Origin: Hyalangium minutum
GTDB lineage: Bacteria > Myxococcota > Myxococcia > Myxococcales > Myxococcaceae
Length of the DNA: 64,000 nucleotides
Reading direction: 5' to 3'
Assembly (NCBI RefSeq): GCF_000737315.1
Contig: NZ_JMCB01000023.1
Span: forward strand, 124,001-188,000
Part shown: one piece after another, positions 3,759-63,901 of the stretch
How positions within the stretch are numbered: the stretch's first letter is position 1
Layout: each line of letters starts with the position of its first letter
Position numbers and translations under genes: made by a program
Notes under the pieces: generated by a model
The model's database searches: none
What the model was told of the DNA's origin: nothing
The model's input: only the letters and a program-made list of their open reading frames with translations

Positions 3759-4181
3759 ATGGGTTCCCGTAGCGTCACAGCAGCAATCTGTGTCGCCGTC
3801 CTTTCGGCCGGTGGTGCGGGGTATTGCTACACGCGAGCGGCGGAGCTGCAGTCCCAGGCGCGCTGGCTGATGGAGCGAGGCAACGCGCAGGCGCTCGAGT
3901 ACGCCGAGCGGCTGGACAACTCGGTGGCGGACGCGCAGCTGAAGACGTTCGCCGAGCGGCGCACGGTGATGGAGAAGGCGCACCTGTGGCAGCGCGGGCA
4001 GATGCTCGGGCTGATGGCGGGGGTGCTCTCGGCACTGGCGGCGTACATGCTGCACCTGCTGCGGCGGCTGGACTCGCAGCTGGATGACGCGTCCGTGGAG
4101 GCTCCGGAGCTGCTCGCGGCGCCGATCGCCTCCTCGAAGGCCGAGCCGACGTCGCGGCTGGTGCCCACGCCGCACCGCTGA
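3759..4181 (+). CDS. Hypothetical small membrane protein
   Basis: Two hydrophobic segments flanking a helical region; GC3-rich codon use; fills the gap between rlmE and the next gene. Confidence 0.7.
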   Translation: MGSRSVTAAICVAVLSAGGAGYCYTRAAELQSQARWLMERGNAQALEYAERLDNSVADAQLKTFAERRTVMEKAHLWQRGQMLGLMAGVLSALAAYMLHLLRRLDSQLDDASVEAPELLAAPIASSKAEPTSRLVPTPHR

Positions 4182-4237
4182 GCGCTCGCCGCTTCTTGCA
4201 CAGCCCTGGCAAGATGGCGCCCTCTCAGGGAGGAGCC

Positions 4238-4525
4238 ATGACCGGCTGCGCGCACTGCGGGAAGCGGCTCGACATCGTCGGCAACCAGGTGGGGCGGAGG
4301 GACGAGTGTCCGCACTGCGGCGAGGAGCTGCGCTCGTGCCGCAACTGCCGCCACTTCGACCCGAGCGTGGCCAAGGAGTGCAAGGAGCCGTTCGCGGACG
4401 TGCCCTCGGACAAGGATGGGGCGAACTTCTGCGAGCTGTTCCAGATTGGAGAGGGTGGCCTGCACGCCAAGGAGAGCAAGGACCAACTGCTCTCGGCCGC
4501 AGAGGCCCTGTTCCGCAAGAAGTAA
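4238..4525 (+). CDS. Small Cys-rich (Zn-ribbon-like) conserved hypothetical protein
   Basis: AGGAG RBS; CAHC, CPHC, CRNC plus two further Cys (ECKE, NFC). Confidence 0.8.
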   Translation: MTGCAHCGKRLDIVGNQVGRRDECPHCGEELRSCRNCRHFDPSVAKECKEPFADVPSDKDGANFCELFQIGEGGLHAKESKDQLLSAAEALFRKK

Positions 4526-4559
4526 GGCGCAGGGGAGATGTCCACAGAGTGGAGGGGCC

Positions 4560-5108
4560 CTACGTCCAGAGAAGAGCCAGGTCCAGCCCCAGCGCTTCGA
4601 ACGGCTCCGCCTGTACGAGTGCCCCGTCCCGATGGAGTGCAAGCTGGACGTAGCGCCCCTCATCGAGCCGGTAGATCTCCAACGTGCGTGAGTCCGGATT
4701 CACGAGCCACACATGGCCCACGCCCTCCTGCGCATACACAGGAAGCTTGACCTCACGATCCAGAACCTGCGTCGAGGACGAGAGCACCTCACAGACCCAG
4801 TCGGGGGGCAGAGTGAAAGCAGCGGTTCGCGGGTACACCGGCATCCGATGACGCCTCCACCCCGCCAAGTCCGGCACGAGAACGTTCTCACCCAGTCACA
4901 GCTCCGGTTCATCCACGATGAACCAACCACTGGGCCCCGGTTCTCCCAGATCGAAACGGTTCAAGAGCAACGCGCCCAGTCGAGAGGCCGTCATCGCATG
5001 AGGCGATGACGGGCGAGGGCTGACGAACAGCTCTCCAGCGACGAGCTCGCCCACGACATTCTCGGGAAGCGCCTCAAGATCCGCGACTGTGGCGGGCTTC
5101 CGTCCCAT
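4560..5108 (-). pseudogene. Uma2/DUF820 family endonuclease interrupted by an in-frame TGA
   Basis: ELVAGELFVSPRP...EPEL*LGENVLVPDLAGWRR...PDWVCEVLSSST..DR..KL..YA; both halves in one frame, stop at 4896-4898. Confidence 0.85.
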
Positions 5109-5143
5109 TCCCTCACCATACTCCCCAACCCCCGTTCCCATGT

Positions 5144-5362
5144 TCATGAGAACGGGTCTAACACTCCGGTCTGACATCCTGGGTAGCCTCCCTTCATCCT
5201 ACCCAACTGGTAGCGTCGACGACAAGTTGGTGCCCGACGTTGCGTCTGCGCGAGCCCCTGCGGTGGCGGAATCATCTGGGAACCTGTCTGACAAGTAGAC
5301 CGGTCTGGGAAGGCGACGACCGGAGCGAGCACGTACGTCCGGGGTGGTACAGACCGAGCCAA
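5144..5362 (-). repeat. Relic of GntR-tail-type repeat (two CQTG-encoding cores)
   Basis: Reverse complement of 5284-5303 CCGGTCTACTTGTCAGACAG matches 40909-40928 at 18/20; second core TGTCAGACCGG at 5166-5176; frame reads DRSTCQTG and YPGCQTG. Confidence 0.65.
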
Positions 5363-5389
5363 TCCCTGCTCCTACCGTGCTCCTCCCGC

Positions 5390-6256
5390 ATGTCACGGTC
5401 CATTGAGCACGCGTCGTTCCCGCAGCACGGTCACGCCCATTCATGGCGCGGGCTCCTCCTGGGGCTCGCGCTTTGCTTGTTGCCAGTGAGCGCTCGAGCC
5501 GCCCCGCTGGGGGATGCCCAGACCTATCTGCTCTCTGCCAAGCGCCTCTACGAGGGCCTCGATTACGAGGCCGCACTCACCCAAATTCAGCTTGCGAGAC
5601 AGGTGCCCCGCAACCGGGACCAGGAACTTACCCTGCTCCTCTACGAAGGCATCCTGCTATCGGAGTTGAACCGATGGGACGAGGGTGCCGCCTCGTTCAA
5701 AACCGCTTTGGAGTTGGATACTGCGGCGAAACTGCCAGTGCAAGTGCCGCCCAAGGTCAGTGCTCGCTTCGAGTCCCTGCGCGAAAAAAAGAAGAGGGAA
5801 CTCGCTGCCCAGGTGACACCAGCCCCGGCTCTTCCCTCCCCTACAGAGAACCCCAGCCCGCCAACAGAAGCGGCTTCACCTGCGTCTCTGCCACCTTCCA
5901 TCGTGACAGTCACTGACAGCCCTTCACCCGAGAAGGAACTGCACAGCTATTCGCTGATCCCAGCGATTGCCGGAGGCAGCCTGGTAGTGGCAGGTGGGGT
6001 CTCCTGGGCTCTCTCTCGTGGCGAACTCAACCGTTTGCGTACGGCTTCCCCCAGCCTCACGAGCGAGGAAGATGTGCGACACAGCGTCTCGCGCGGACGT
6101 ACCTTGCAGACGCTTGGGATGGGCCTGCTGGGAGCGGGAACAGCGGGCCTGCTGACAGCAGCGGGCATGTACATGCTCGGAGGGCCTTCTCGGCCCACAA
6201 CAATTGGCGTGGGGACGACTGGGCAAGCCGTCATCCTTTATGGAGACTGGCCATGA
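5390..6256 (+). CDS. Secreted TPR-like protein with Pro/Ser linker and C-terminal hydrophobic anchor
   Basis: Signal peptide; LYEGLDYEAAL...LLYEGILL...LPVQVPPKV; homologous to 62132 and 63008 ORFs; ATGA overlap with next gene. Confidence 0.8.
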   Translation: MSRSIEHASFPQHGHAHSWRGLLLGLALCLLPVSARAAPLGDAQTYLLSAKRLYEGLDYEAALTQIQLARQVPRNRDQELTLLLYEGILLSELNRWDEGAASFKTALELDTAAKLPVQVPPKVSARFESLREKKKRELAAQVTPAPALPSPTENPSPPTEAASPASLPPSIVTVTDSPSPEKELHSYSLIPAIAGGSLVVAGGVSWALSRGELNRLRTASPSLTSEEDVRHSVSRGRTLQTLGMGLLGAGTAGLLTAAGMYMLGGPSRPTTIGVGTTGQAVILYGDWP

Positions 6257-9003
6257 GCCGGGGCGCCATAAGCAGAAGCCTGCCTCATACAGCATTCGCC
6301 GTCATCCTGGCAGCCCTCAGTGGCTGCGCCGACTTCGAGCAGGCGGGTGAATCTTTTTGCCAACAGAACCTCTCGCGCTGTGGCCGAGCCACGGAGCCCG
6401 AGCCCTCTTCCAATGAAACCATTCCCGACGCTGGGGAGCCCAGTTCCAGCGATTCAGGCCCAGGCACTCCAAACGCGGGGGGATCTGATGCGGGAGTCAT
6501 GGATTCAGGGGTTCCAGACGTGGCAGCTCCTGACTCGGGCACTCCGGACGCGGGCAGGCCCGATGCAGGAACTTCTCAAGACGCAGGGCTCCCGGACGCA
6601 GGTCCACCGCCCAATACACCTCCCACCATTACCGTAAGCTCCCAGTCCGCCTCTCAGGTGGCTGCGCACGGAACTGTCACCTTCTCAGTGGTGGCTCAAG
6701 ATAATGAGAGCAGTTCACTCCAGTTCTCCTGGAGCGCCAGTACAGGAGCTTTCGGAAGCCCTCAGAGTACTAGCAACTCCAGTATCGTCACTTGGTCCGC
6801 CGGGGGTTGTGCAGCCGGTGGCACTGTGACCATCACCGTCAAAGTCTCCGACGCACAAGCTGACTTCTCGACCAAAGCTTTCAGCGTCTCAATGGCTCGC
6901 TGTCTACCCACGTCCATTGCAAGTGGGAGTAGACACTCTATTGCCTTGCTTGCGGATGGCACTGTTTGGGCCTGGGGAGACAATACCGCTGGTCAGCTTG
7001 GCGACGGTACCTCTACCCTGCGCTACATCCCTTCCCAGGTCTCGGGACTCTCCGGCATCACCGCCCTGGCTGCTGGAGGCTACCACTCTCTGGCCTTGCG
7101 CAACGACGGCACTGTCTGGGCCTGGGGCGAAAACTCCTATGGCCAACTGGGTGATGGGACCACCACCGATCGTCTTACCCCCGTCCAAGTACCGGGACTC
7201 TCGGGCATCACCACCCTGGCCGCTGGCATCTACCACTCTCTGGCCCTGCGCAACGACGGCACTGTTTGGGCCTGGGGCTATAACAGCGTTGGCCAACTCG
7301 GCGATGGAACCACTACCAATCGCCTCACCCCCGTCCAAGTACCGGGGCTCTCGGGCACTACGACTCTGAACGCTGGAGGCGCCCACTCTCTGGCCTTGCG
7401 CAACGACGGCACTGTCTGGGCTTGGGGCTACAACGGCTATGGCCAGCTAGGAGCTGGGACCACCACCGATCGTCTCACTCCCCTCCAGATTCCAGGACTT
7501 TTAGGCATCACGGCCCTGGCCACTGGAATCTCCCACTCCCTGGCCCTGAGTAACAACGGCACTGTCTGGGCCTGGGGTTTCAACCTCTACGGCCAGTTGG
7601 GCGATGGGACGACCACCAATCGCCTTACCCCCGTCCAGGTACCAGGGCTCTCGGGAACTACGACTCTAAACGCTGGAGGCTCCCACTCTCTGGCCTTACG
7701 CAACGACGGCACTGTCTGGGCTTGGGGCTACAACAACTATGGCCAAGTGGGCGATGGGAGCACCATCAATCGCCGCACCCCAGTCCAGGTCTCCGGCCTC
7801 ACGGGCATTACGGTCATGGCCGCTGCAGAATCCCACACTCTGGCTTTGCGCAACGACGGCACTGTCTGGGCTTGGGGCCACAACGGCTATGGCAAGCTGG
7901 GCGATGGAACTAGCGCGGAGCGCCTCACCGCTGTCCGAGTCTTAGGCATTTCGGGCATCACAGCCCTAGCAGCTAGAGGCTACCACACTCTGGCCTTGCG
8001 CAACGACGGCACTGTCTGGGCTTGGGGCTACAACAACTATGGCCAAGTGGGCGATGGGACCACCACCAATCGCCCCACCCCTTTCCAGCTCTCCGGCCTC
8101 TCGGGCATCACGGCCCTGGCCGCTGGAGAATCCCACTCTCTGGCTCTGCGCAATGACGGCACTGTTTGGGCCTGGGGCTATAACGTCGCTGGCCAACTCG
8201 GCGATGGGACGACCACCAATCGCCTTACCCCCTTCCAGGTCCCTGGCCTCTCAGGCATTACGGCCCTGGCCGCAGGAGACTTTCACTCTCTGGCGTTGCG
8301 CAACGACGGCACTGTCTGGGCCTGGGGCTCCAACGGCGCTGGCCAACTCGGCGATGGGACGACCACCAATCGCCTCACCCCCTTCCAGGTTCCAGGACTT
8401 TTAGGCATCACGACCCTGTCTGCTGGAATCTCCCACTCTCTAGCCCTGCGCAGCGACGGCACCGTCTGGGCCTGGGGTTCCAACCTCTACGGCCAACTGG
8501 GCGATGGGACCACCACCAATCGCCCCACCCCCTTCCAGGTCTTAGGACTCTTGGGCATCAACGCCCTGGCCGCTGGAGGCTACCACTCTCTGGCCTCGCG
8601 CAACGACGGCACTACTTGGGTCTGGGGCTACAATTACTATCGTCAACTGGGCGATGGGACGACCACCGATCGCCCCACCCCTTTCCAGCTCTCCAGCCTC
8701 TCAGGCATCACGACCCTGTCGGCTAACATCTTCCACTCTCTGGCCCTTCGCAACGATGGCACTATTCGGTCGTGGGGCAGCAACAGCCTGGGCCGACTCG
8801 GCGACGGGACTCTTATTCATCGAGCTACCCCCGTCCAGGTCTCCGGCCTCTCAAACATTACGGCCCTAGCCGCTGGAGTCGCCCACTCTCTGGCCCTTCG
8901 CAACAACGGCACCGTCTGGGCCTGGGGTTCAAACTTCTACGACCAGATTGGCGACGGAACTCCTGCAATCTTCCCGGTACCTATACAGACCCAGCTTCCG
9001 TAA
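6253..9003 (+). CDS. RCC1-repeat lipoprotein (14 blades, probably two 7-bladed propellers) with PDAG linker and Ig/PKD-like domain
   Basis: Lipobox LSGC; PDAG/DSG repeats; 14 copies of HSLAL.NDGTVWAWG.N..GQLGDG. Confidence 0.92.
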   Translation: MSRGAISRSLPHTAFAVILAALSGCADFEQAGESFCQQNLSRCGRATEPEPSSNETIPDAGEPSSSDSGPGTPNAGGSDAGVMDSGVPDVAAPDSGTPDAGRPDAGTSQDAGLPDAGPPPNTPPTITVSSQSASQVAAHGTVTFSVVAQDNESSSLQFSWSASTGAFGSPQSTSNSSIVTWSAGGCAAGGTVTITVKVSDAQADFSTKAFSVSMARCLPTSIASGSRHSIALLADGTVWAWGDNTAGQLGDGTSTLRYIPSQVSGLSGITALAAGGYHSLALRNDGTVWAWGENSYGQLGDGTTTDRLTPVQVPGLSGITTLAAGIYHSLALRNDGTVWAWGYNSVGQLGDGTTTNRLTPVQVPGLSGTTTLNAGGAHSLALRNDGTVWAWGYNGYGQLGAGTTTDRLTPLQIPGLLGITALATGISHSLALSNNGTVWAWGFNLYGQLGDGTTTNRLTPVQVPGLSGTTTLNAGGSHSLALRNDGTVWAWGYNNYGQVGDGSTINRRTPVQVSGLTGITVMAAAESHTLALRNDGTVWAWGHNGYGKLGDGTSAERLTAVRVLGISGITALAARGYHTLALRNDGTVWAWGYNNYGQVGDGTTTNRPTPFQLSGLSGITALAAGESHSLALRNDGTVWAWGYNVAGQLGDGTTTNRLTPFQVPGLSGITALAAGDFHSLALRNDGTVWAWGSNGAGQLGDGTTTNRLTPFQVPGLLGITTLSAGISHSLALRSDGTVWAWGSNLYGQLGDGTTTNRPTPFQVLGLLGINALAAGGYHSLASRNDGTTWVWGYNYYRQLGDGTTTDRPTPFQLSSLSGITTLSANIFHSLALRNDGTIRSWGSNSLGRLGDGTLIHRATPVQVSGLSNITALAAGVAHSLALRNNGTVWAWGSNFYDQIGDGTPAIFPVPIQTQLP
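6911..8995 (+). repeat. 14 x 150-bp coding tandem repeat (RCC1 blades)
   Basis: ACTGTCTGGGCCTGGGG-type core recurs at exactly 150-bp steps from 6961 to 8911. Confidence 0.95.
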
Positions 9004-39698: not shown

Positions 39699-39790
39699 CC
39701 ATCTGGCGGAGTGAGCCCGAGCATCGTGGCCCGGGCTCGCTCCCAGCGCTGGGCCTATACGCTCGAGCTTGAGCCCCAGAACCAAGCGGG

Positions 39791-39810
39791 TGTCCCCCTG
39801 CAGTGGGACA
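39791..39810. promoter_or_regulatory. 20-bp near-perfect palindrome upstream of GntR gene
   Basis: TGTCCCCCTGCAGTGGGACA, 18/20 positions self-complementary. Confidence 0.5.
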
Positions 39811-39889
39811 TTCCCCGAGGCCCGCTCAGCGCTCGTGTCAGACCCATCTGATGTGCTCCTGGCCCTTTGCAACGAGAAGGGTGGCGGGC

Positions 39890-41344
39890 ATGGAACGGAC
39901 GGGGCTCGTAGCGCACATCGAGCATGACCTCGAGCAAGTGATCTCCTGGGGCAAGCTGCCCAGGAATGGCTTTCTTCCCTCGGAGCAGGTGCTGGCAGAG
40001 CGCCACGGTGTCTCACGAGCCACGGCCCGGGTGGCATTGCTACGGCTCGAAGCGCGAGGACTGGTGGTGCAGCACCCTGGACGCCGGAGCCGCGCGGTGC
40101 CTTTGCAGGAGGCAGTGACGCTGGAGAACCTGAGCGTGGCACTCCACGCCGAAGGCCCCTCCCATCCAGAGAGACAGCGCCTGCTGGAAGGATTCCTCGA
40201 GCTCAAGCGAGAGCTGATGGTGGATTTGCTGGCCGCCTGCTGCGAGCGAGCCTCCGCGTCCAACTTGAGCCAGCTCCTAAACGTATGCTTCACGTTAGGA
40301 GAGGCGGCGCACTGGGAAGAGAGCAGCGTCTGGGCAAGACGGGAGTTCGAGCTGCTGCGGTTGGCCGCTGTGGCGGCGAACCGTCCTGGGCACTTCCTGC
40401 TCGTCCAGACGCTGGAGCGCTCTTTCTGGGCCATGGCCGCACGACTGCTCCCCGTTCTGGACTGCGCGGCCATCCGCCACTGGGGGCTCTGTGCCTTCCA
40501 CGCGTTGGGAGACAAAGACGCTCAAGCACTGAAGCGAGAGTTGCCGGCGCTGCTCCAGGCAAGCGATGAGCGCGTGCTCAGCTCGCTCGCATCAACCCGC
40601 CGTGAGTACACCCCACCGCCAAGACTCCACGGCTCGGCGCATCAAAGACCTGAGCGGAGTTCCAAGTCCAAGCCCACGGGAGACAAGGAAGTGGACGCGG
40701 ATCATCCTCACCGACCTGCTTGTCAGACCGGTTTACACGAGGAGCCGCCGGAAGATGCCCTTCCCTTCGAGCCCCTTCAGGGCAACCTGCCGGATACGGC
40801 AGTGCTCCGCGGGGCTGCTGGTCAGACCGGTTCGCGCGAAGGGCCATCGGAAGCTCCTGCTCCTTCTGCGACGCCGCCGCGCCAGTTGCCAGACGCAGCC
40901 GTGGCCTACCGGTCTGCTTGTCAGACACGTGCGTGCCAGACACCGCATGAGGAAACACCGCCCGCTGAGGGTGCTCAGCGCCAGTTACCAGACGCAGCCG
41001 TAGCCTACCGGTCTGCTTGTCAGACACGTGCGTGCCAGACACCACCGGAGGAAACACCGACCGACGAGGGTGCCCAGCGCCGCTTGTCCGAACTGACCGT
41101 GGCCAACCAGTCTGCTTGTCAGACACTTTCGGAGCAGGTGCGAAAGGCCTTCGGCTCCGAGTCTGAATCCTGGTTCACACGCTCCGGAAGCGATTCCGGC
41201 GGAAAGATGTTCGGGGCAGGCGAAGGCTCGGGCCTGGAAGCGCTCCGGGGCGCACAGGCGTGGTCGCCCATTCCATGGTCACGATGTGCCTGGGCCCGCC
41301 TACCGCTTCCCATGGCACCGGCGCTGAGGGTGGGTTCTGTATAG
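39890..41344 (+). CDS. GntR/FadR-family regulator with long repetitive C-terminal tail
   Basis: wHTH LPSEQVLAERHGVSRATARVAL..LEARGLV; FCD-like domain; about 240-aa low-complexity tail. Confidence 0.85.
   Translation: MERTGLVAHIEHDLEQVISWGKLPRNGFLPSEQVLAERHGVSRATARVALLRLEARGLVVQHPGRRSRAVPLQEAVTLENLSVALHAEGPSHPERQRLLEGFLELKRELMVDLLAACCERASASNLSQLLNVCFTLGEAAHWEESSVWARREFELLRLAAVAANRPGHFLLVQTLERSFWAMAARLLPVLDCAAIRHWGLCAFHALGDKDAQALKRELPALLQASDERVLSSLASTRREYTPPPRLHGSAHQRPERSSKSKPTGDKEVDADHPHRPACQTGLHEEPPEDALPFEPLQGNLPDTAVLRGAAGQTGSREGPSEAPAPSATPPRQLPDAAVAYRSACQTRACQTPHEETPPAEGAQRQLPDAAVAYRSACQTRACQTPPEETPTDEGAQRRLSELTVANQSACQTLSEQVRKAFGSESESWFTRSGSDSGGKMFGAGEGSGLEALRGAQAWSPIPWSRCAWARLPLPMAPALRVGSV
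40716..41126 (+). repeat. Five degenerate 99-bp tandem units with conserved CTGCT(T/G)GTCAGAC core
   Basis: Cores start at 40716, 40815, 40914, 41013, 41112. Confidence 0.9.
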
Positions 41345-53987: not shown

Positions 53988-56900
53988 CAGGACTTGTGGC
54001 CCGCGTCATCCTTGGACTTGGAGGCCGCCGGTGCTCCGGCCGAGGCCCTCGCGGCCTCTTCGGCCTCGAACGCGGCGAAGGGATCGGCCTCGGGCTCCTG
54101 CGGCGCAGAGAGCGTCGCGGAGTCAGGGAACTCGGGCTCGGCGGAGGAGATCAGCTGATTCCAACTCGACTCCAGCCCTGCTCCTTCCGGCTCGCCCACG
54201 GACACCACCGGTGTCCCCGGGCCCACGCCGAACTTCCCTGTGGCCGTCTGATCCGGCAGCGCGACGCCGTACTTGCTCGGAGGCACCGGCTGCCCTGTCG
54301 CGATCCCGTATTTGGCCGTCGACACGGCGGAATCCACCGCTGCGCTCCCCTGCCCTCCCGGCTTCGTGGGCACCGCGAGCGCAGGATTGCTCTCGACCGG
54401 AGCCTCCAGTTCGGCACGCACGACTCCGAAGATGCCGGTCTTCTCGGGCGCTTCGTCCTCGGGCTCGGCGCCCAGCGGGGGCTCGGGCTCCTTGCTCACG
54501 ATGCCGTACTTGCCCGTCGTCGTGGGCTGCATGCTCGCGATCGAGAACTTCCCTGTGGCCGTCAGATCCGGCGCGGATGCGGGCGCGGGGATCGTGGGGA
54601 TGGGGGCTTCGGGAGCTGCAGGCTCGGCGGAGGCGCTGGGCTCGGCCTTCTGGGCCTCGTCCTCGGGCTTCCACTGCGGCACGAAGTCCCAGGTCGGCGC
54701 CAGCGCGACCTCGTCGTCCGTACTCCCCGTCTCCTTGAGCTGCGGTGCCTCCGAGGTGTCGAGCTCGAGCCCTCGTTCGGTGCTCGGAGGCGCCTCGGGC
54801 TCATGGCCCGTCTGGGCCATGGACATGAACTCCCAGGTCGCCGCGAGCTGCATGGGCTCCTCGGGAGCCGGGGGCAGCTCGCCCAGATCGATCGGAGCCC
54901 TCGGCGCCTGCGCGACCTGCTCTCCGACCTTCGCGACCTGCGCCTCCGCGACCACCTCTTCCGCCGGCATGACCCGCGCTTCCGCAGGTACCTCCTCGGC
55001 CGGCGCGGAGACCTTCGCGGCAGGAGCAACCCGCTCCTGAGGCGGTGCGGCCCGCTCCTGCGGGGCGATGACAGCGGCGGAAGGTGCTGGCGCTTTCTCA
55101 GCCACGTCCTTGGCCGGCATGCCTATGTCCAGGGCATCCGCGACATCGAACGGGTTCGGAGGCGGTTCCTCGGACACCGGCTCAGCGGTGAGCACGGGCA
55201 GTTCCGCCGACACTGGCTCGGCGGTGAGCACGGGCACTTCCGCGGACACCGGCTCAGGCGTCAGCACGGGCGCTTCCGCAGACACCGGCTCGAGGGAGAG
55301 CACAGGCGCTTCCGCGGATACCGGCTCGGCCGTCAGCACAGGCACTTCCGCGGACACCGGCTCGGCCGTCAGCACAGGCACTTCCGCGGACACCGGCTCG
55401 GCCGTCAGCACAGGCACTTCCGCGGACACCGGCTCGGGGGAGAGCACGGGGGCTTCCGCGGACATCGGCTCAGCCGTGAGCACGGGCAGTTCCGCTGACA
55501 CTGGCTCGGCGGTGAGCACAGGCACTTCTGCGGACACCGGCTCAGCCATCAGCAGCGGCGCTTCCTCGGACGCTGGCTCGGCGGTGAGCACGGGCAGTTC
55601 CGCCGACACCGGCTCGGCGGTGAGCACAGGCACTTCCGCAGACACCGGCTCGGCCGTCAGCACCGGCGCTTCCGCAGACACCTCTTCGTCCAGCGAGACG
55701 GGCAGCTCTTCGGCAACCTCTTCGATCGGCTCGAGGGCCTCGGCCTCTGCGTCGGCCACTTGCGAGGGCTTCTCGGACTGAGGCCCTGCCTCCTGGGCCG
55801 CAGCCTTCTCCACCGCCTCCTCGGACTTCAGCGGAGACATGTCCCAGTCATCGGGAACAGGAGGCACTGTGGTGGCCTTCTCTTCGATCTTGCCGAGCTC
55901 CGGCTCGGGCTCGAAGACGTCCTCAACGTCGACGGGCTCGCTCTCCTCGGAGGGAGCCAGTTCCTCCAGCGAGGCGGCTTCATCGACCGCGATCTCCACG
56001 GCAGCCGAGGCGTCCGCCTGCTCCGCGTCGTGGGCTCCCGCCTTCGCCGCCCCAGGAGCGCCAGCTTGCGCGGAAGCACCCGAGACTGCGGGAATCATGG
56101 AGGGAGCCTGCGCACCGGGCCGCTGCGCGGATGTGCCGGCAGGAGTCATACCGGGAGGAACCGCGACCGCAGCCTGCTGCCCCGGGAGCCCCGCGATGGA
56201 AGGCAGCGTGGGGGGACGCGCACTGGCGGACGGCGCGCTGGGGACCGGAATCGGAGGACGCGTGCCCATCGCCACGGGCGGCACTTCAGGCAGGGACGGC
56301 ACGGGAGGCGCCGGAGGAACCGGCGGGGAGGCCATGGCGGGCGGTGCCCCGACGGCAGGAATGGCCGAGCTGCTGGGGCGCTCACTGCGCGCAACGGCCG
56401 CTACAGGCGGTACCCCAACGGCGGCCCCCCCCGCGCTGCTGGGGCGCTCGCTGCGAGCAGCGGGGGCCACAGCCGGTGCGCCGACGGCGGGCAGAGCCGC
56501 GCTGCTGGGGCGCTCATGGCGAGACGCAGACACGGGATGAGGAGCCGCCTGGGGATGCGCCCCCACGGGAGTTCCTGCAGGGGCTGCCACCCCGGGCGAC
56601 GGTACGGGAACAGGCGGCCGGGTCGCTCCAGGCGGCATCGTCGGCATGGGAGGCCCAGCCACCGACGCAGGGCTGTGCGCGAACGCCGCGACAGGCGGGC
56701 TCGTCACGGCTGGAATTCCCGCGGACGTGGGCCGTGCGGAGGGAACCGGCGGGGACGCAGGCGGCAAAGGCACTGCAGGGAGTGTCGGAGGCCGCTGCAC
56801 CGCGACCTGGGGCGCCCGAGGAATCGCACCGGGGACGGCGCCCTGGGCCGCTCCAGCGGGAGGCGGCTGAGGCGCCAGCGTGTGCGGAGCTCCTGTCGCC

Positions 56901-59131
56901 TGAGGACGAGGCGCCGCCTGAGCCCCATGGGGTGCCTGCGCGATCGGCGCGGGCGCATGCTGCACCCCCGGAGGCATCGGGACATGCGGCCCCCCTGCCG
57001 GGGCGGGATGAGCACCCGGAGGCACAGGGACAGGATGGGCTCCCGGCTGCGCCGGATAGGTCCCCGACGGCGCTGCGGCGTGGGGGATTCCCGACTGCGT
57101 GGGATGGACCCCTGGCGCCCCGGCGGCGCGAGGCGCTCCGGCCTGCGCAGGATGAGTTCCCGGAGGAACTGCAGCGGGGTGTGCACCGGTCTGAGGCGGA
57201 TGAGCCGCCGGTACCGGAGCGTGGGTTCCCGGCTGGGCCGGATGCGTTCCCGATGGCGCTGGAACGGGATGAGCACCCGCCTGCGCCGGATGAACTCCCG
57301 ACGGCGCTGAGACGGGATGCGCTCCGGCCTGAGCTGGATGCGTTCCCGGCAGAGCCTGGGGCGCTGGCATCTGCGCATGGGGCGCGCCGGGAGGCACTCC
57401 CGCCAGCGTCGGCCGGGCCGGCTGAGCACCCGCAGGAGGAGGGGCCTGTGGCGGCCGCGCACCCGGCGGAACAGGAGCGACTGTATGGAACTGCCCAGGC
57501 ATGGGCACGGCCGTCGGAGGCCGAGGAGCCGCTGCGGCAGGTGGTTGAGGCCCCGCAGCCACGGGCGCCCTCGGAAGCTGCCCGGCGGGGGCAGCGGGCG
57601 GAGCCGCGGGGTGCAGCCCCGGGCCTGTTCCCGTCAACGTCGGAGGCCCCGGGCGGGCTCCAGGGGCCTGCGGGTGAGCCGCCATGACGGGAGCGGTGCC
57701 TGCGATCGGCATCTGCGCGTGGGCAGGAGGAACAGGAGCCATCGTCGGCGATGACCCCGTCCCCGTACGAGCCCCCATCACGGGAGGAGAACCCGCCCCC
57801 GGCACTGCACCCGCCGGAGGCTGCCCCGCAGCTGAGGGATGCGTGCCTGCGGCAGGATGCGCGCCAGAGGGATGCGCCGCCGCAGGATGCGCTGCGGGCT
57901 GGGCCGCAGGATGCGCTGCGGGCTGGGCCGCAGGATGCGCTGCGGGCTGGGCCGCAGGATGCGCTGCGGGCTGGGCCGCAGGATGCGCCACTGCCGCCGG
58001 ATGCGCCGCCGGATGCATCGCGGGCGCCGTGCTCGGAACCATGGGAGCCCCCTGCGGCGTGCCCTGCTGAGGCATCCCCGGTCGCGACGCCGCGCCGGGC
58101 TGCGCTGCGGCAGCCAACGGCGTCGGAGCATGCGCGGGGCCAGGAGCACTGGGAGCCGCCTGCGGAGCCCCCGTATTGAGCATGGACGCCCAGGCTGCAG
58201 GCGGTAGCCCTGAACGCACGGCCCCCGCTGCCGGAGCCGCCGGGGGAGGAGGCGCTGCGGGCGCACCAGGAGGCCTGGCCTGCATCGGAGCCGGGGGCGC
58301 GGCAGGCGCGGCAGGCGCGGCAGGCATGGCGAGGGCTGCAGGCGCGGCACCCAGAGCATCTTGCTCGTCATCCTCCGCGCTCAGGTACTGCCCAGGCGCG
58401 AGCCCTCCGAGCGATCCAATGCCCTCAGGCAGCTCGAGCGGCTGAACCCCATTGTCATCGGGCGCAGGCTCGTCGGGGAGCGGCGCGTTGTCACTGTCCC
58501 CCGAGTCCTCGCTGAGGAACTGGCCCGGCTCGAGCCCACCGAACATCCCCGCCTTCTGCCCCGCACCGGCCGCGGGAGGCTTGGCAGTCTGCGGACCTCC
58601 CGGAGGCCCCGGGGGCGCCGTCATGGGAGCCCCCGCCGCGTTGCGCGCGCCCGCTCCCGACTTCGTCGCCTCGGGATCCAGCTTGATGTACCGCTCGGGC
58701 CGGACGATGCCGAGGCGCTTCTCCAGGTAGGCGTAGAGCCGCAGCTCGGGGACGACGCACGGAATGACGCGCAGCCCCGTGGTGAAGGAGATCTCATCCA
58801 CCGCGTCCATGTCGAAGGGGCTCGCCATCGCCACCTTGATGCGGCGCCCGTCCACCGCGAGCGGGAACACGTAGTGTTTCTCGATCAGCGCCACCGGGAT
58901 CGTCCCGAGCGTGGCCGACGTCACGGCCTCGAACTCGGCGATGGTCGCCTGCGGATAGCGCATCTGCTCCGCGAGCACCGCGCCCAACGTCTCGATGTCC
59001 AGGTACTCCAACTCGACGAGGTTCGTGCCGAGCCGGCCCCCGTAGATCATCTGGGCCTTCAGGGCTTCGTCGAGCTGCCCTGGGTTGATGAGGCCCTTGC
59101 GGACCAGAAGCGCACCGAGCTTTTCAGCCAT
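53987..59131 (-). CDS. MshEN/T2SSE_N-domain protein with very long Pro/Ala-rich and acidic disordered tail (about 1714 aa)
   Basis: KLGALLVRKGLI...LDEALKAQ.....RLGTNL tandem MshEN motif; no ATPase motifs downstream. Confidence 0.85.
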   Translation of the reverse strand: MAEKLGALLVRKGLINPGQLDEALKAQMIYGGRLGTNLVELEYLDIETLGAVLAEQMRYPQATIAEFEAVTSATLGTIPVALIEKHYVFPLAVDGRRIKVAMASPFDMDAVDEISFTTGLRVIPCVVPELRLYAYLEKRLGIVRPERYIKLDPEATKSGAGARNAAGAPMTAPPGPPGGPQTAKPPAAGAGQKAGMFGGLEPGQFLSEDSGDSDNAPLPDEPAPDDNGVQPLELPEGIGSLGGLAPGQYLSAEDDEQDALGAAPAALAMPAAPAAPAAPPAPMQARPPGAPAAPPPPAAPAAGAVRSGLPPAAWASMLNTGAPQAAPSAPGPAHAPTPLAAAAQPGAASRPGMPQQGTPQGAPMVPSTAPAMHPAAHPAAVAHPAAQPAAHPAAQPAAHPAAQPAAHPAAQPAAHPAAAHPSGAHPAAGTHPSAAGQPPAGAVPGAGSPPVMGARTGTGSSPTMAPVPPAHAQMPIAGTAPVMAAHPQAPGARPGPPTLTGTGPGLHPAAPPAAPAGQLPRAPVAAGPQPPAAAAPRPPTAVPMPGQFHTVAPVPPGARPPQAPPPAGAQPARPTLAGVPPGAPHAQMPAPQALPGTHPAQAGAHPVSAPSGVHPAQAGAHPVPAPSGTHPAQPGTHAPVPAAHPPQTGAHPAAVPPGTHPAQAGAPRAAGAPGVHPTQSGIPHAAAPSGTYPAQPGAHPVPVPPGAHPAPAGGPHVPMPPGVQHAPAPIAQAPHGAQAAPRPQATGAPHTLAPQPPPAGAAQGAVPGAIPRAPQVAVQRPPTLPAVPLPPASPPVPSARPTSAGIPAVTSPPVAAFAHSPASVAGPPMPTMPPGATRPPVPVPSPGVAAPAGTPVGAHPQAAPHPVSASRHERPSSAALPAVGAPAVAPAARSERPSSAGGAAVGVPPVAAVARSERPSSSAIPAVGAPPAMASPPVPPAPPVPSLPEVPPVAMGTRPPIPVPSAPSASARPPTLPSIAGLPGQQAAVAVPPGMTPAGTSAQRPGAQAPSMIPAVSGASAQAGAPGAAKAGAHDAEQADASAAVEIAVDEAASLEELAPSEESEPVDVEDVFEPEPELGKIEEKATTVPPVPDDWDMSPLKSEEAVEKAAAQEAGPQSEKPSQVADAEAEALEPIEEVAEELPVSLDEEVSAEAPVLTAEPVSAEVPVLTAEPVSAELPVLTAEPASEEAPLLMAEPVSAEVPVLTAEPVSAELPVLTAEPMSAEAPVLSPEPVSAEVPVLTAEPVSAEVPVLTAEPVSAEVPVLTAEPVSAEAPVLSLEPVSAEAPVLTPEPVSAEVPVLTAEPVSAELPVLTAEPVSEEPPPNPFDVADALDIGMPAKDVAEKAPAPSAAVIAPQERAAPPQERVAPAAKVSAPAEEVPAEARVMPAEEVVAEAQVAKVGEQVAQAPRAPIDLGELPPAPEEPMQLAATWEFMSMAQTGHEPEAPPSTERGLELDTSEAPQLKETGSTDDEVALAPTWDFVPQWKPEDEAQKAEPSASAEPAAPEAPIPTIPAPASAPDLTATGKFSIASMQPTTTGKYGIVSKEPEPPLGAEPEDEAPEKTGIFGVVRAELEAPVESNPALAVPTKPGGQGSAAVDSAVSTAKYGIATGQPVPPSKYGVALPDQTATGKFGVGPGTPVVSVGEPEGAGLESSWNQLISSAEPEFPDSATLSAPQEPEADPFAAFEAEEAARASAGAPAASKSKDDAGHKS
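55170..55687 (-). repeat. About 14 x 36-bp coding repeat (EPVSAEVPVLTA)
   Basis: Read directly in DNA and translation. Confidence 0.95.
57891..57986 (-). repeat. 4 perfect 24-bp coding repeats (AAHPAAQP)
   Basis: GCTGCGGGCTGGGCCGCAGGATGC x4. Confidence 0.95.
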
Positions 59132-63007: not shown

Positions 63008-63901
63008 GTGATAAGAATCATGGTACATTTCAGTAAGTCGGACCTTGCCATGGCATTTCTCACCCTCTCCATGGTCTGGGGAACGGCTCCAAGAGCGGCT
63101 TCTCCCTCTTCGCGGATGCAACCGACGAGTACGGATTCCCACAGTCCCGATTCAACGAAGAAGCACCTTCCAACAGCGCTTGCTGTAGCGCTCCGCCTAT
63201 ACGAGCGCCTTGAATATGAACAAGCACTTGAGCAGTTAGCTCGCTCGAAATCGGCGACCTGGGACACCGATGTGCGTGTGCTCGCTTGGCTCTATGAGGG
63301 AATCATTCTTGCCAACCTCGGCTATGCAGACCGCTCTCGTGAAGCTTTTCGCGAGGGACTCCGCCTCCATCCATCCTCTGTCCTGCCCATCGAGGTCTCA
63401 CCTAAGATCGCCCAACTCTTCCAGGACGTTCGCCATGAAGTGCAACAAGAAACCTCAGCATCACCTCTACCGAAGGCGTTGGAACTCCCCTCTGTTCCTC
63501 CTGTCGATAAGCAAGCAGAGCAATCTCCGCCTTCGATTGAAAACCACAACCCCTCTCCTGAGCCACGTCAGGCGGAGGCTACAGACAGTAGTCCAAAGCT
63601 TGCTCCCTGGGCACCAACGTCTCCTTCCAAGCCAGAAGAAAGCCGCTTCGTGAAAAGCCACCACGTGGCGTTTGCCCTTGGGGGGCTCCTCGCATCTACC
63701 GGCATCGTGCTACTGGCGACCATGGGCTCCGCACATCCCGAGGACAAATCCACGCACCTGCTCACGGGCAGCATTGCTGTCGTGGGAGGACTGAATCTCA
63801 TTGCCTTTGGGGCAACCACTGCAATGGGACAACGCAGCCCCCAAACCGTGGGTCCTCTCCAGCGCCGGTATGCCTCTGTCGGTGCTCAGTTGTCCTTCTA
63901 G
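63008..63901 (+). CDS. Tandem paralog of the preceding TPR-like protein
   Basis: LYERLEYEQALEQL...WLYEGIILANLG...LPIEVSPKI; ends GAQLSF. Confidence 0.78.
   Translation: MIRIMVHFSKSDLAMAFLTLSMVWGTAPRAASPSSRMQPTSTDSHSPDSTKKHLPTALAVALRLYERLEYEQALEQLARSKSATWDTDVRVLAWLYEGIILANLGYADRSREAFREGLRLHPSSVLPIEVSPKIAQLFQDVRHEVQQETSASPLPKALELPSVPPVDKQAEQSPPSIENHNPSPEPRQAEATDSSPKLAPWAPTSPSKPEESRFVKSHHVAFALGGLLASTGIVLLATMGSAHPEDKSTHLLTGSIAVVGGLNLIAFGATTAMGQRSPQTVGPLQRRYASVGAQLSF

Follow-up and report, generated by a model that had tools for sequence, protein, structure and literature searches.

Introduction

The REP/BIME sequences and REPINs of Enterobacteria and Pseudomonas are short imperfect palindromes that occur in tens to hundreds of mostly intergenic copies. 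They are found single or clustered, in both orientations and as genome-specific variants, within convergent and co-directional spacers, and the classical REPs carry a conserved 5' GTAG and are linked to RAYT, a Y1 transposase. MITEs, such as the Correia elements of Neisseria and the ERIC/IRU sequences, are small non-autonomous dispersed elements with inverted repeats that can carry protein-binding sites or promoters. Rickettsia palindromic elements (RPEs), in turn, are reportedly palindromic, located in frame within protein genes and translated; they have a non-coding-like composition and are scattered over many unrelated genes. With respect to transcription factors, the operators of the FadR subfamily are built of TKGT/ACMA boxes with GT-N3-AC spacing around a free centre base, often accompanied by a further, weaker box at 7-12 nt from the centre (PMC4494728).

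In this work we analyse a stretch of 64,000 nucleotides from Hyalangium minutum (hereafter, the window), in which a near full-length stand-alone repeat copy lies at 5253-5327 on the minus strand. With high confidence, this copy belongs to a dispersed palindromic repeat family of Archangiaceae and Myxococcaceae. The repeat resembles REP and REPIN sequences in copy number, mostly intergenic location, clustering and genome-specific variants, but differs from REPs in that it has no 5' GTAG, in that its conserved part is a core of 20-25 nt with a free centre base, and in its heavy enrichment as translated in-frame arrays within one transcription-factor gene family; at the loci examined, the FadR-like regulator alone was found associated with the repeat. 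With RPEs it shares a palindromic, in-frame, translated nature and a non-coding-like composition. In contrast to them, it belongs to another phylum and has another sequence, most copies outside the regulator tails are intergenic, and the coding copies are concentrated as tandem 99-bp units in the C-terminal tail of one FadR-like family. The core appears similar to the operators of the FadR subfamily in its TTGT-CNG-ACAG boxes and in the GGTC/TGTC located about 10 nt upstream (PMC4494728), but unlike those operators it is contained in a repeat of ~80 bp with GC-rich arms, is present in about 100 copies among the matches listed, and is found in all intergenic contexts as well as inside the regulator's own coding tail. 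It is also small, dispersed and of inverted-repeat character, as MITEs are, although no sharp terminal inverted repeats, target-site duplication or parent IS were found. As the element does not fully fit the definition of a REP/REPIN, an RPE or a FadR operator, we file it among the dispersed bacterial palindromic repeats as a variant of its own. By Rfam and the searchable literature, where neither a myxobacterial REP-like repeat nor the core sequence was found, it is a previously undescribed dispersed repeat.

Results

The initial annotation of this DNA reported a 20-nt match between the intergenic region and the 3' part of a GntR gene, and direct comparison bears it out: the reverse complement of 5284-5303, CCGGTCTACTTGTCAGACAG, has two differences from CCGGTCTGCTTGTCAGACAC at 40909-40928 (18/20). 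Allowing up to three mismatches, the 20-mer is found four times in the window versus 0.00 expected from shuffles, the 10-mer CTTGTCAGAC five times versus 0.13 expected, and the 8-mer TGTCAGAC seven times versus 1.84 expected, the sites of the latter being 5169-5176(-), 5286-5293(-), 39836-39843(+) and four positions in the GntR tail. The match is genuine and far above chance. The motif is nevertheless not restricted to the GntR gene, and its designation as a GntR-tail motif had to be abandoned: the repeat is genome-wide and the tail is one of its hosts.

A scan of public genomes, one per species, with the 20-nt GTCTRSTTGTCNGACAGGTT retrieved at least 120 loci. Among the matches listed, about 100 belong to Archangiaceae or Myxococcaceae, including a Hyalangium MAG (~40 contigs), an Archangium MAG (~34), an uncultured Archangiaceae MAG, Corallococcus exercitus and a Myxococcaceae MAG, and about 17 are scattered over unrelated phyla, which equals the chance expectation. 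Copy numbers come from few genomes and are lower bounds, the exact core being counted at least 43 times in one Hyalangium MAG and 36 times or more in one Archangium MAG. A GntR N-domain adjoins 8 of 120 loci among the matches listed. According to a crude GC3-based gene finder, ~77% of the copies among these matches are intergenic, and many of those apparently inside genes fall within 150 nt of the beginning of a stop-to-stop frame. The gene contexts of the copies, again among the matches listed, are co-directional (+E+ 27, -E- 20), convergent (21) and divergent (15). The family is thereby genome-wide and mostly intergenic in distribution. A test for enrichment at the borders of accessory islands had also been suggested; the scan confirmed the dispersal of the motif, and the G+C around copies, used as a proxy for such borders, was not significantly lower (0.687 vs 0.693, p 0.11).

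The consensus core of the family reads AACC(T/G)GTCTG(C/G)TTGTC-N-GACAGGTT, within a weaker flank consensus (..CCGGGCGCG..CT..CCGAACC, core, GGTTCGCGCC..GCGCCGCCGG..) that is self-complementary about the core. Including its GC-rich, self-complementary arms, the repeat is an imperfect palindrome of ~75-90 bp. Typical copies fold as long hairpins (z -7.1, -3.5, -3.1 and -2.6), and tandem clusters of copies show a spacing of 47-118 bp. Within the core, one base alone varies freely, the N in the very middle of TGTC-N-GACA, which a hairpin would place in its stem. Its identity is biased by genome: G in 13/13 copies of C. exercitus, T 29, A 13 and C 1 in the Hyalangium MAG, and A 27 and T 9 in the Archangium MAG. 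Within single genomes, the consensus fades gradually outward from the core and neither sharp element ends nor target-site duplications were found; GTAG is absent from the 111-copy consensus. RNAalifold on a MAFFT alignment of 113 copies, which is spoiled by indels in the arms, returned just three invariant core pairs. In swapped-arm folding, matched and mismatched arms gave 25.1 and 25.4 enclosing pairs, respectively, and since these counts are equal, copy-specific covariation is absent. Repeat arrays with a spacing of 117-118 bp, interleaved with a related motif (AAACCTGTCCGACAGTCGGACAGGTT), were observed in C. exercitus at L053 535-885 and L078 3299-3925, with no detectable GntR N-domain adjoining either of them.

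Searching the window by nhmmer with a profile built solely from 111 copies in other genomes, the copy at 5253-5327(-) (envelope 5248-5338) was recovered with an E-value of 8.6e-11 and 37.7 bits over model positions 12-86 of 90. It is the top profile match in the window, above every GntR-tail copy present there, and is consequently an independent family member that does not derive from the neighbouring GntR tail. The homologous stretch around this first core spans ~75 nt, far beyond the 20 nt of the original match. It contains, at 5281-5300(-), the invariant 20-nt core GTCTACTTGTCAGACAGGTT, which holds the palindrome TGTC-A-GACA (5285-5293) and, upstream of it, an additional half-site, GGTC. 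In the arms, by comparison, the long hairpin is gone: the folding z is +1.29 (+1.15 for the copy at L156, a close relative), as against -7.1 to -2.6 in typical copies, which defines the window copy as a decayed member of the family. Simple scans of 5050-5450 revealed no sigma-70 promoters or intrinsic terminators, and an Rfam search of the window region and of five loci with typical copies yielded nothing above noise. By eye, a possible CGACGAC direct repeat was seen close to the window copy.

The copy sits in the divergent intergenic spacer 5131-5389, between a Uma2-family gene and a TPR-like gene (5390-6256, +), and ends 63 nt before the ATG of the latter at 5390. The Uma2 gene (4560-5177, -), downstream of the repeat on the minus strand, is frameshifted into frames 4896-5177, which contains the N-terminal part, and 4560-4877 (Pfam Uma2, 4.7e-21). 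Its orthologues in two close relatives, L155 and L156, are intact and 205 aa long, and the split in the window is either a frameshift pseudogene or an assembly error. On the other side, the TPR-like gene is followed by an RCC1-repeat gene encoding 916 aa (6253-9003, +), which comprises 12.6 tandem 150-bp units (7035-8927). Both genes (5390-9003) have an atypical GC3 of 0.67-0.68, versus 0.85-0.93 for most window genes, and the pair keeps its synteny in relatives in spite of this composition. A small inverted repeat, CCTACC-N5-GGTAG, is present in the Uma2-TPR spacer at 5199-5214 and also upstream of the TPR homologue in a Hyalangium MAG (L157, ~5877-5892), at a locus that lacks the dispersed repeat, and may regulate the TPR gene as a site of its own.

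Among named organisms, Hyalangium species provide the closest relatives of the TPR protein as well as of the regulator. In L155 and L156, whose TPR proteins are 90% and 83% identical to that of the window, the gene order is FtsJ-like methyltransferase, two small genes, Uma2, spacer, TPR and RCC1, and the repeat is found at the orthologous place with 32.6 and 45.9 bits. The core stretch 5278-5309 is identical at 32/32 and 31/32 positions in the orthologous loci; in the arms the figures are 53/59 and 48/59. This is nevertheless a mild signal, and the invariance of the core counts as weak evidence, because the whole Uma2-TPR spacer (92.7% and 87.4% identical) is about as conserved as the TPR coding DNA (90.3% and 84.4%) in these two relatives. 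In L157 and L158, the gene that precedes TPR encodes a kinase. In the Hyalangium MAG, a more distant genome, the TPR homologue (64% identical) follows such a kinase gene and lacks the repeat upstream, and the final ~55 nt before its ATG are recognisably conserved; in a filled/empty comparison with L157 the element is absent and the alignment has diverged too far for an insertion point to be placed. A GntR gene was found at this position in none of L155, L156, L157 and L158. The locus holds no lost GntR gene. The Uma2, repeat and TPR order kept in relatives runs against the suggestion that such a gene was disrupted here, and nothing at the locus indicates that the motif marks a cassette's arrival.

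The initial annotation had further described a second core on the minus strand, at 5166-5177 (ATGTCAGACCGG). The observation itself stands: the two cores are 117 nt apart and both read CQTG in an open frame of 72 codons, 5144-5362(-). The second one is, on the other hand, a short match of 8-11 nt at 5169-5176, solely as TGTCAGAC(C)GG, that goes undetected by the repeat profile even when the 150-nt region is searched alone, and the idea of a decayed second copy of the repeat was rejected. The ATG within it (ATGTCAGAC) is the Uma2 start codon in the gene calls of the relatives, and the surrounding block 5143-5180 is identical at 37/38 positions in both of them. We judge the 72-codon frame to be non-coding, its GC1/GC2/GC3 of 0.63/0.62/0.59 being flat and non-coding-like versus a GC3 of 0.85-0.93 in ordinary window genes. 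It has no Pfam match, and its similarity to GntR tails is limited to ~20-23 residues (PVVAFPDRSTCQTGSQMIPPPQG), that is, one repeat unit.

For any trace of a further regulator gene, 120 family N-domains were compared with the window by tblastn, given that unfiltered whole GntR proteins were swamped by spurious low-complexity matches. Near 4000-8000 the best E-value was 0.07, and the expected strand and order never occurred. Close to the window end, at 63555-63832(+), there is weak tblastn similarity (E ~0.004) to the GntR wHTH region in two frames, which may be part of another GntR-family gene leaving the window, or noise.

The regulator of the window is a FadR-subfamily GntR protein of 484 aa (39890-41344, +; Pfam GntR), whose N-domain of ~240 aa has a FadR chimera, PdhR and NanR as nearest solved structures. 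It is followed by a tail of 245 aa containing five in-frame repeat copies with a 99-bp period and a flat codon-position GC (0.70/0.62/0.62). The profile matches these copies partially, at 40716-40761, 40815-40856, 40881-40927, 40981-41026 and 41083-41125 (8.5-25.5 bits), versus full-length matches of 39-62 bits for tail copies in homologues. Such homologues are numerous in Hyalangium, Stigmatella, Corallococcus and metagenomes, and many of their tails contain 33-aa repeats around PNRSAC-x-TGS (x = Q, P, H, L or R). What these 33-aa units represent is the same DNA repeat, copied in tandem and translated in frame, which explains why the window copy resembles a GntR tail. In 346 kb of GntR-centred loci, 29 of 32 profile matches lie inside regulator ORFs, an enrichment of ~100-fold over the flanking DNA.

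At the DNA level, the core CGGTCTGCTTGTC-N-GACAGGTTC hardly varies among 35 tails, from proteins whose N-domains are 45-65% identical to that of the window. Thirty-six of 37 forward tail copies share one frame, and the A/T-ending third positions of TCT GCT TGT .. ACA GGT are kept in 33-35 of 36 copies despite the high GC3 of these genomes. It is the second codon positions that vary most, among them the centre base N, with radical amino acid change. A pattern in which DNA is fixed and residues vary implies constraint or homogenisation acting on nucleotides, the opposite of purifying selection at the protein level. The tail repeats are conserved as DNA rather than as protein. An inverted copy was also found inside a tail at L003 (8460-8510(-), gene 7464-8753 +), where it is read in frame as NLSDKQTGSCQ; both orientations give similar peptides because the repeat is quasi-palindromic.

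Several other features of these tails were recorded. They (e.g., 40610-41344; 35 loci) remain open for 100-300 codons despite their flat GC, and tail length and repeat number differ widely among paralogues. A C-terminal WSPVPW motif with synonymous variation is found in the closest subgroup of regulators alone. Elsewhere in the window, tandem arrays are present at 55166-55682 (36 bp x 14.4), 56340-56523 (66 bp x 2.8), 57229-57355 (overlapping 21-bp and 48-bp arrays) and 57879-57988 (24 bp x 4.6, perfect copies), and the whole region 55166-57988 gives spurious low-complexity matches to GntR tails.

Upstream of the regulator gene, at 39835-39843(+) and 55 nt from its ATG, lies the leader motif GTGTCAGAC. 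In the form [A/G]TGTCAG(A/C)C, it is located ~55 nt upstream of the ATG in 30/30 non-redundant homologue genes (exactly 55 where counted) and, by eye, between -35-like and -10-like positions, followed by a Shine-Dalgarno block. The conserved leader as a whole extends over ~60 nt (39780-39890 in the window; ~30 loci, e.g., L003, L005 and L150), as [A/G]TGTCAG(A/C)C .. CTGAT.TCATGGC .. TGCAACGAGGAGGGTGGCGGACATGG with a fixed ATG spacing, and its [A/G]TG could open a short out-of-frame upstream ORF (MSD...). The motif and the core of the repeat share 8 nt only, and the centre base in the promoter does not track the genome-specific centre base of the repeat.

Compared with the consensus of the FadR subfamily, the core TTGT-CNG-ACAG agrees at 7 of 8 box positions, has the GT-N3-AC spacing and a free centre, and is accompanied by an extra box (GGTC/TGTC) ~10 nt upstream of that centre. 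In the window, it lies in the promoter region between two divergent genes, at 63-87 nt from the ATG of TPR and ~100 nt upstream of the likely Uma2 start; family-wide, its contexts are also convergent and co-directional.

Discussion

Our results clearly show that the copy at 5253-5327(-) is a member of a genome-wide, mostly intergenic repeat family, that no GntR remnant exists at the locus and that the tail copies of the FadR-like regulators are conserved at the nucleotide level. Taken as a whole, with moderate confidence, the locus is best explained as a stand-alone, partly decayed copy of a dispersed repeat of ~75-90 bp, the core of which would be a putative FadR-type operator. In such a model, double-stranded DNA would be the working form of the invariant core, a FadR-type operator made of TTGT-N3-ACAG and an auxiliary half-site, and a regulator bound there, 63-87 nt ahead of the TPR start, could influence the TPR-RCC1 genes or Uma2. 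As the arms no longer pair, any hairpin-dependent activity has probably been lost at 5253-5327.

The initial annotation offered two alternatives for this region, the first taking 5144-5362(-) for what is left of the 3' end of a second GntR gene, truncated by insertion of the TPR/RCC1 cassette. The open 72-codon frame and the alignment of ~20-23 of its residues with one tail unit speak for such an origin. That similarity amounts to exactly one repeat unit, which is also found about 100 times outside GntR genes among the matches listed, and in related genomes ~90% of the copies listed are far from any GntR gene. No remnant of the N-domain is present, the codon-position GC is flat and lacks a coding signature, the order of Uma2, repeat and TPR is kept in relatives devoid of a GntR gene, and the copy is closer to the consensus of the family than to the GntR tail of the window. 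We therefore regard a truncated gene as very improbable and the idea as already largely refuted. No more credible is a real small protein of 72 aa, or an N-terminal extension of Uma2, with CQTG motifs. The frame is open and contains two such motifs, and the gene calls of Uma2 in the relatives begin at the ATG of ATGTCAGAC; against this, coding signature and Pfam match are both lacking, the CQTG motifs lie in a frame other than that of Uma2, and the residue at the Q position of the tails changes radically (Q/P/R/L/H) over a fixed DNA sequence.

As the main rival we consider a REP/REPIN- or MITE-like repeat of purely selfish or structural nature, without a regulatory role, of which the window copy would be a functionless relic; we assign it a substantial probability, though one well short of even. 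The repeat would function, now or in the past, as a hairpin of single-stranded DNA or RNA, spread by some enzyme or by gene conversion, and the GntR tails would be a tolerant landing site inherited by the gene family. Several lines of evidence are in agreement with this proposal: the long GC-rich self-complementary arms with a significant folding z in typical copies, the genome-specific sub-families with very unequal copy numbers between genomes, the tandem clusters spaced by 47-118 bp, the occurrence in every intergenic context and in both orientations, the inverted in-frame copy in L003, the loss of the hairpin in the window copy (z +1.29), and the lack of the element upstream of the TPR homologue in the Hyalangium MAG. 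It accounts less well for the core, in which the loop bases TTGT are invariant and the one free base, the centre of TGTC-N-GACA, occupies a stem position that is mismatched with T or C in ~40% of copies. Neither sharp ends, nor target-site duplications, nor the GTAG motif of classical REPs were found, the core has been retained while the arms decayed in the window lineage, and the ~100-fold enrichment in the ORFs of one regulator family is hard to attribute to tolerance alone.

The second alternative was a dispersed operator through which the GntR protein would control accessory loci. Part of it agrees with our data, the motif being dispersed and its core plausible as an operator, given that it fits the FadR-type consensus and equals the conserved 8-mer of the GntR promoters. 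The part concerning accessory loci fared worse, with copies in every intergenic context and no compositional sign of island borders. An operator role is weakened as well by the presence of copies in convergent in addition to divergent spacers, which is not the classical placement of operators. The window copy may accordingly be described as a dispersed repeat copy that, judging from its sequence, may act as a dispersed operator.

As to the protein that would recognise it, the special link of the regulators to the repeat is real and consists of the tandem in-frame tail copies conserved at the nucleotide level. Binding of the core by these regulators is plausible in view of the enrichment in their ORFs, the conserved 8-mer in their leaders, the fit to the FadR consensus and the free centre base. 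The core may thus be proposed, tentatively and at less than even probability, as a candidate FadR-type operator bound by the tail-bearing FadR-like regulators.

A broader and more doubtful proposal is a partnership between transcription factor and repeat, in which the putative operator of the FadR-like regulators would have spread genome-wide on a palindromic repeat. The regulator genes would carry the operator twice, ~55 nt upstream of the start and as the translated tandem array of the tail, and the latter might act in cis via looping, roadblock or titration. The regulator, the tail of its gene and the ~100 dispersed sites would evolve in concert, with genome-specific repeat variants.

Conclusions

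The analysis presented here exposes a dispersed myxobacterial repeat and, in the tails of the FadR-like regulators, a clear bacterial case outside Rickettsia in which a palindromic repeat is translated in frame with the constraint acting on DNA and not on protein. For annotators, this means that a DNA element gives rise, as by-products, to the 33-aa 'PNRSACQTGSCQ' repeats and to small ORFs such as 5144-5362. Our findings also raise the idea of a FadR-like family that would recognise a repeat-borne operator also embedded in its own coding sequence. If such a partnership holds true, the dispersed copies, including the one upstream of the TPR/RCC1 genes, would wire unrelated genes into a regulon.
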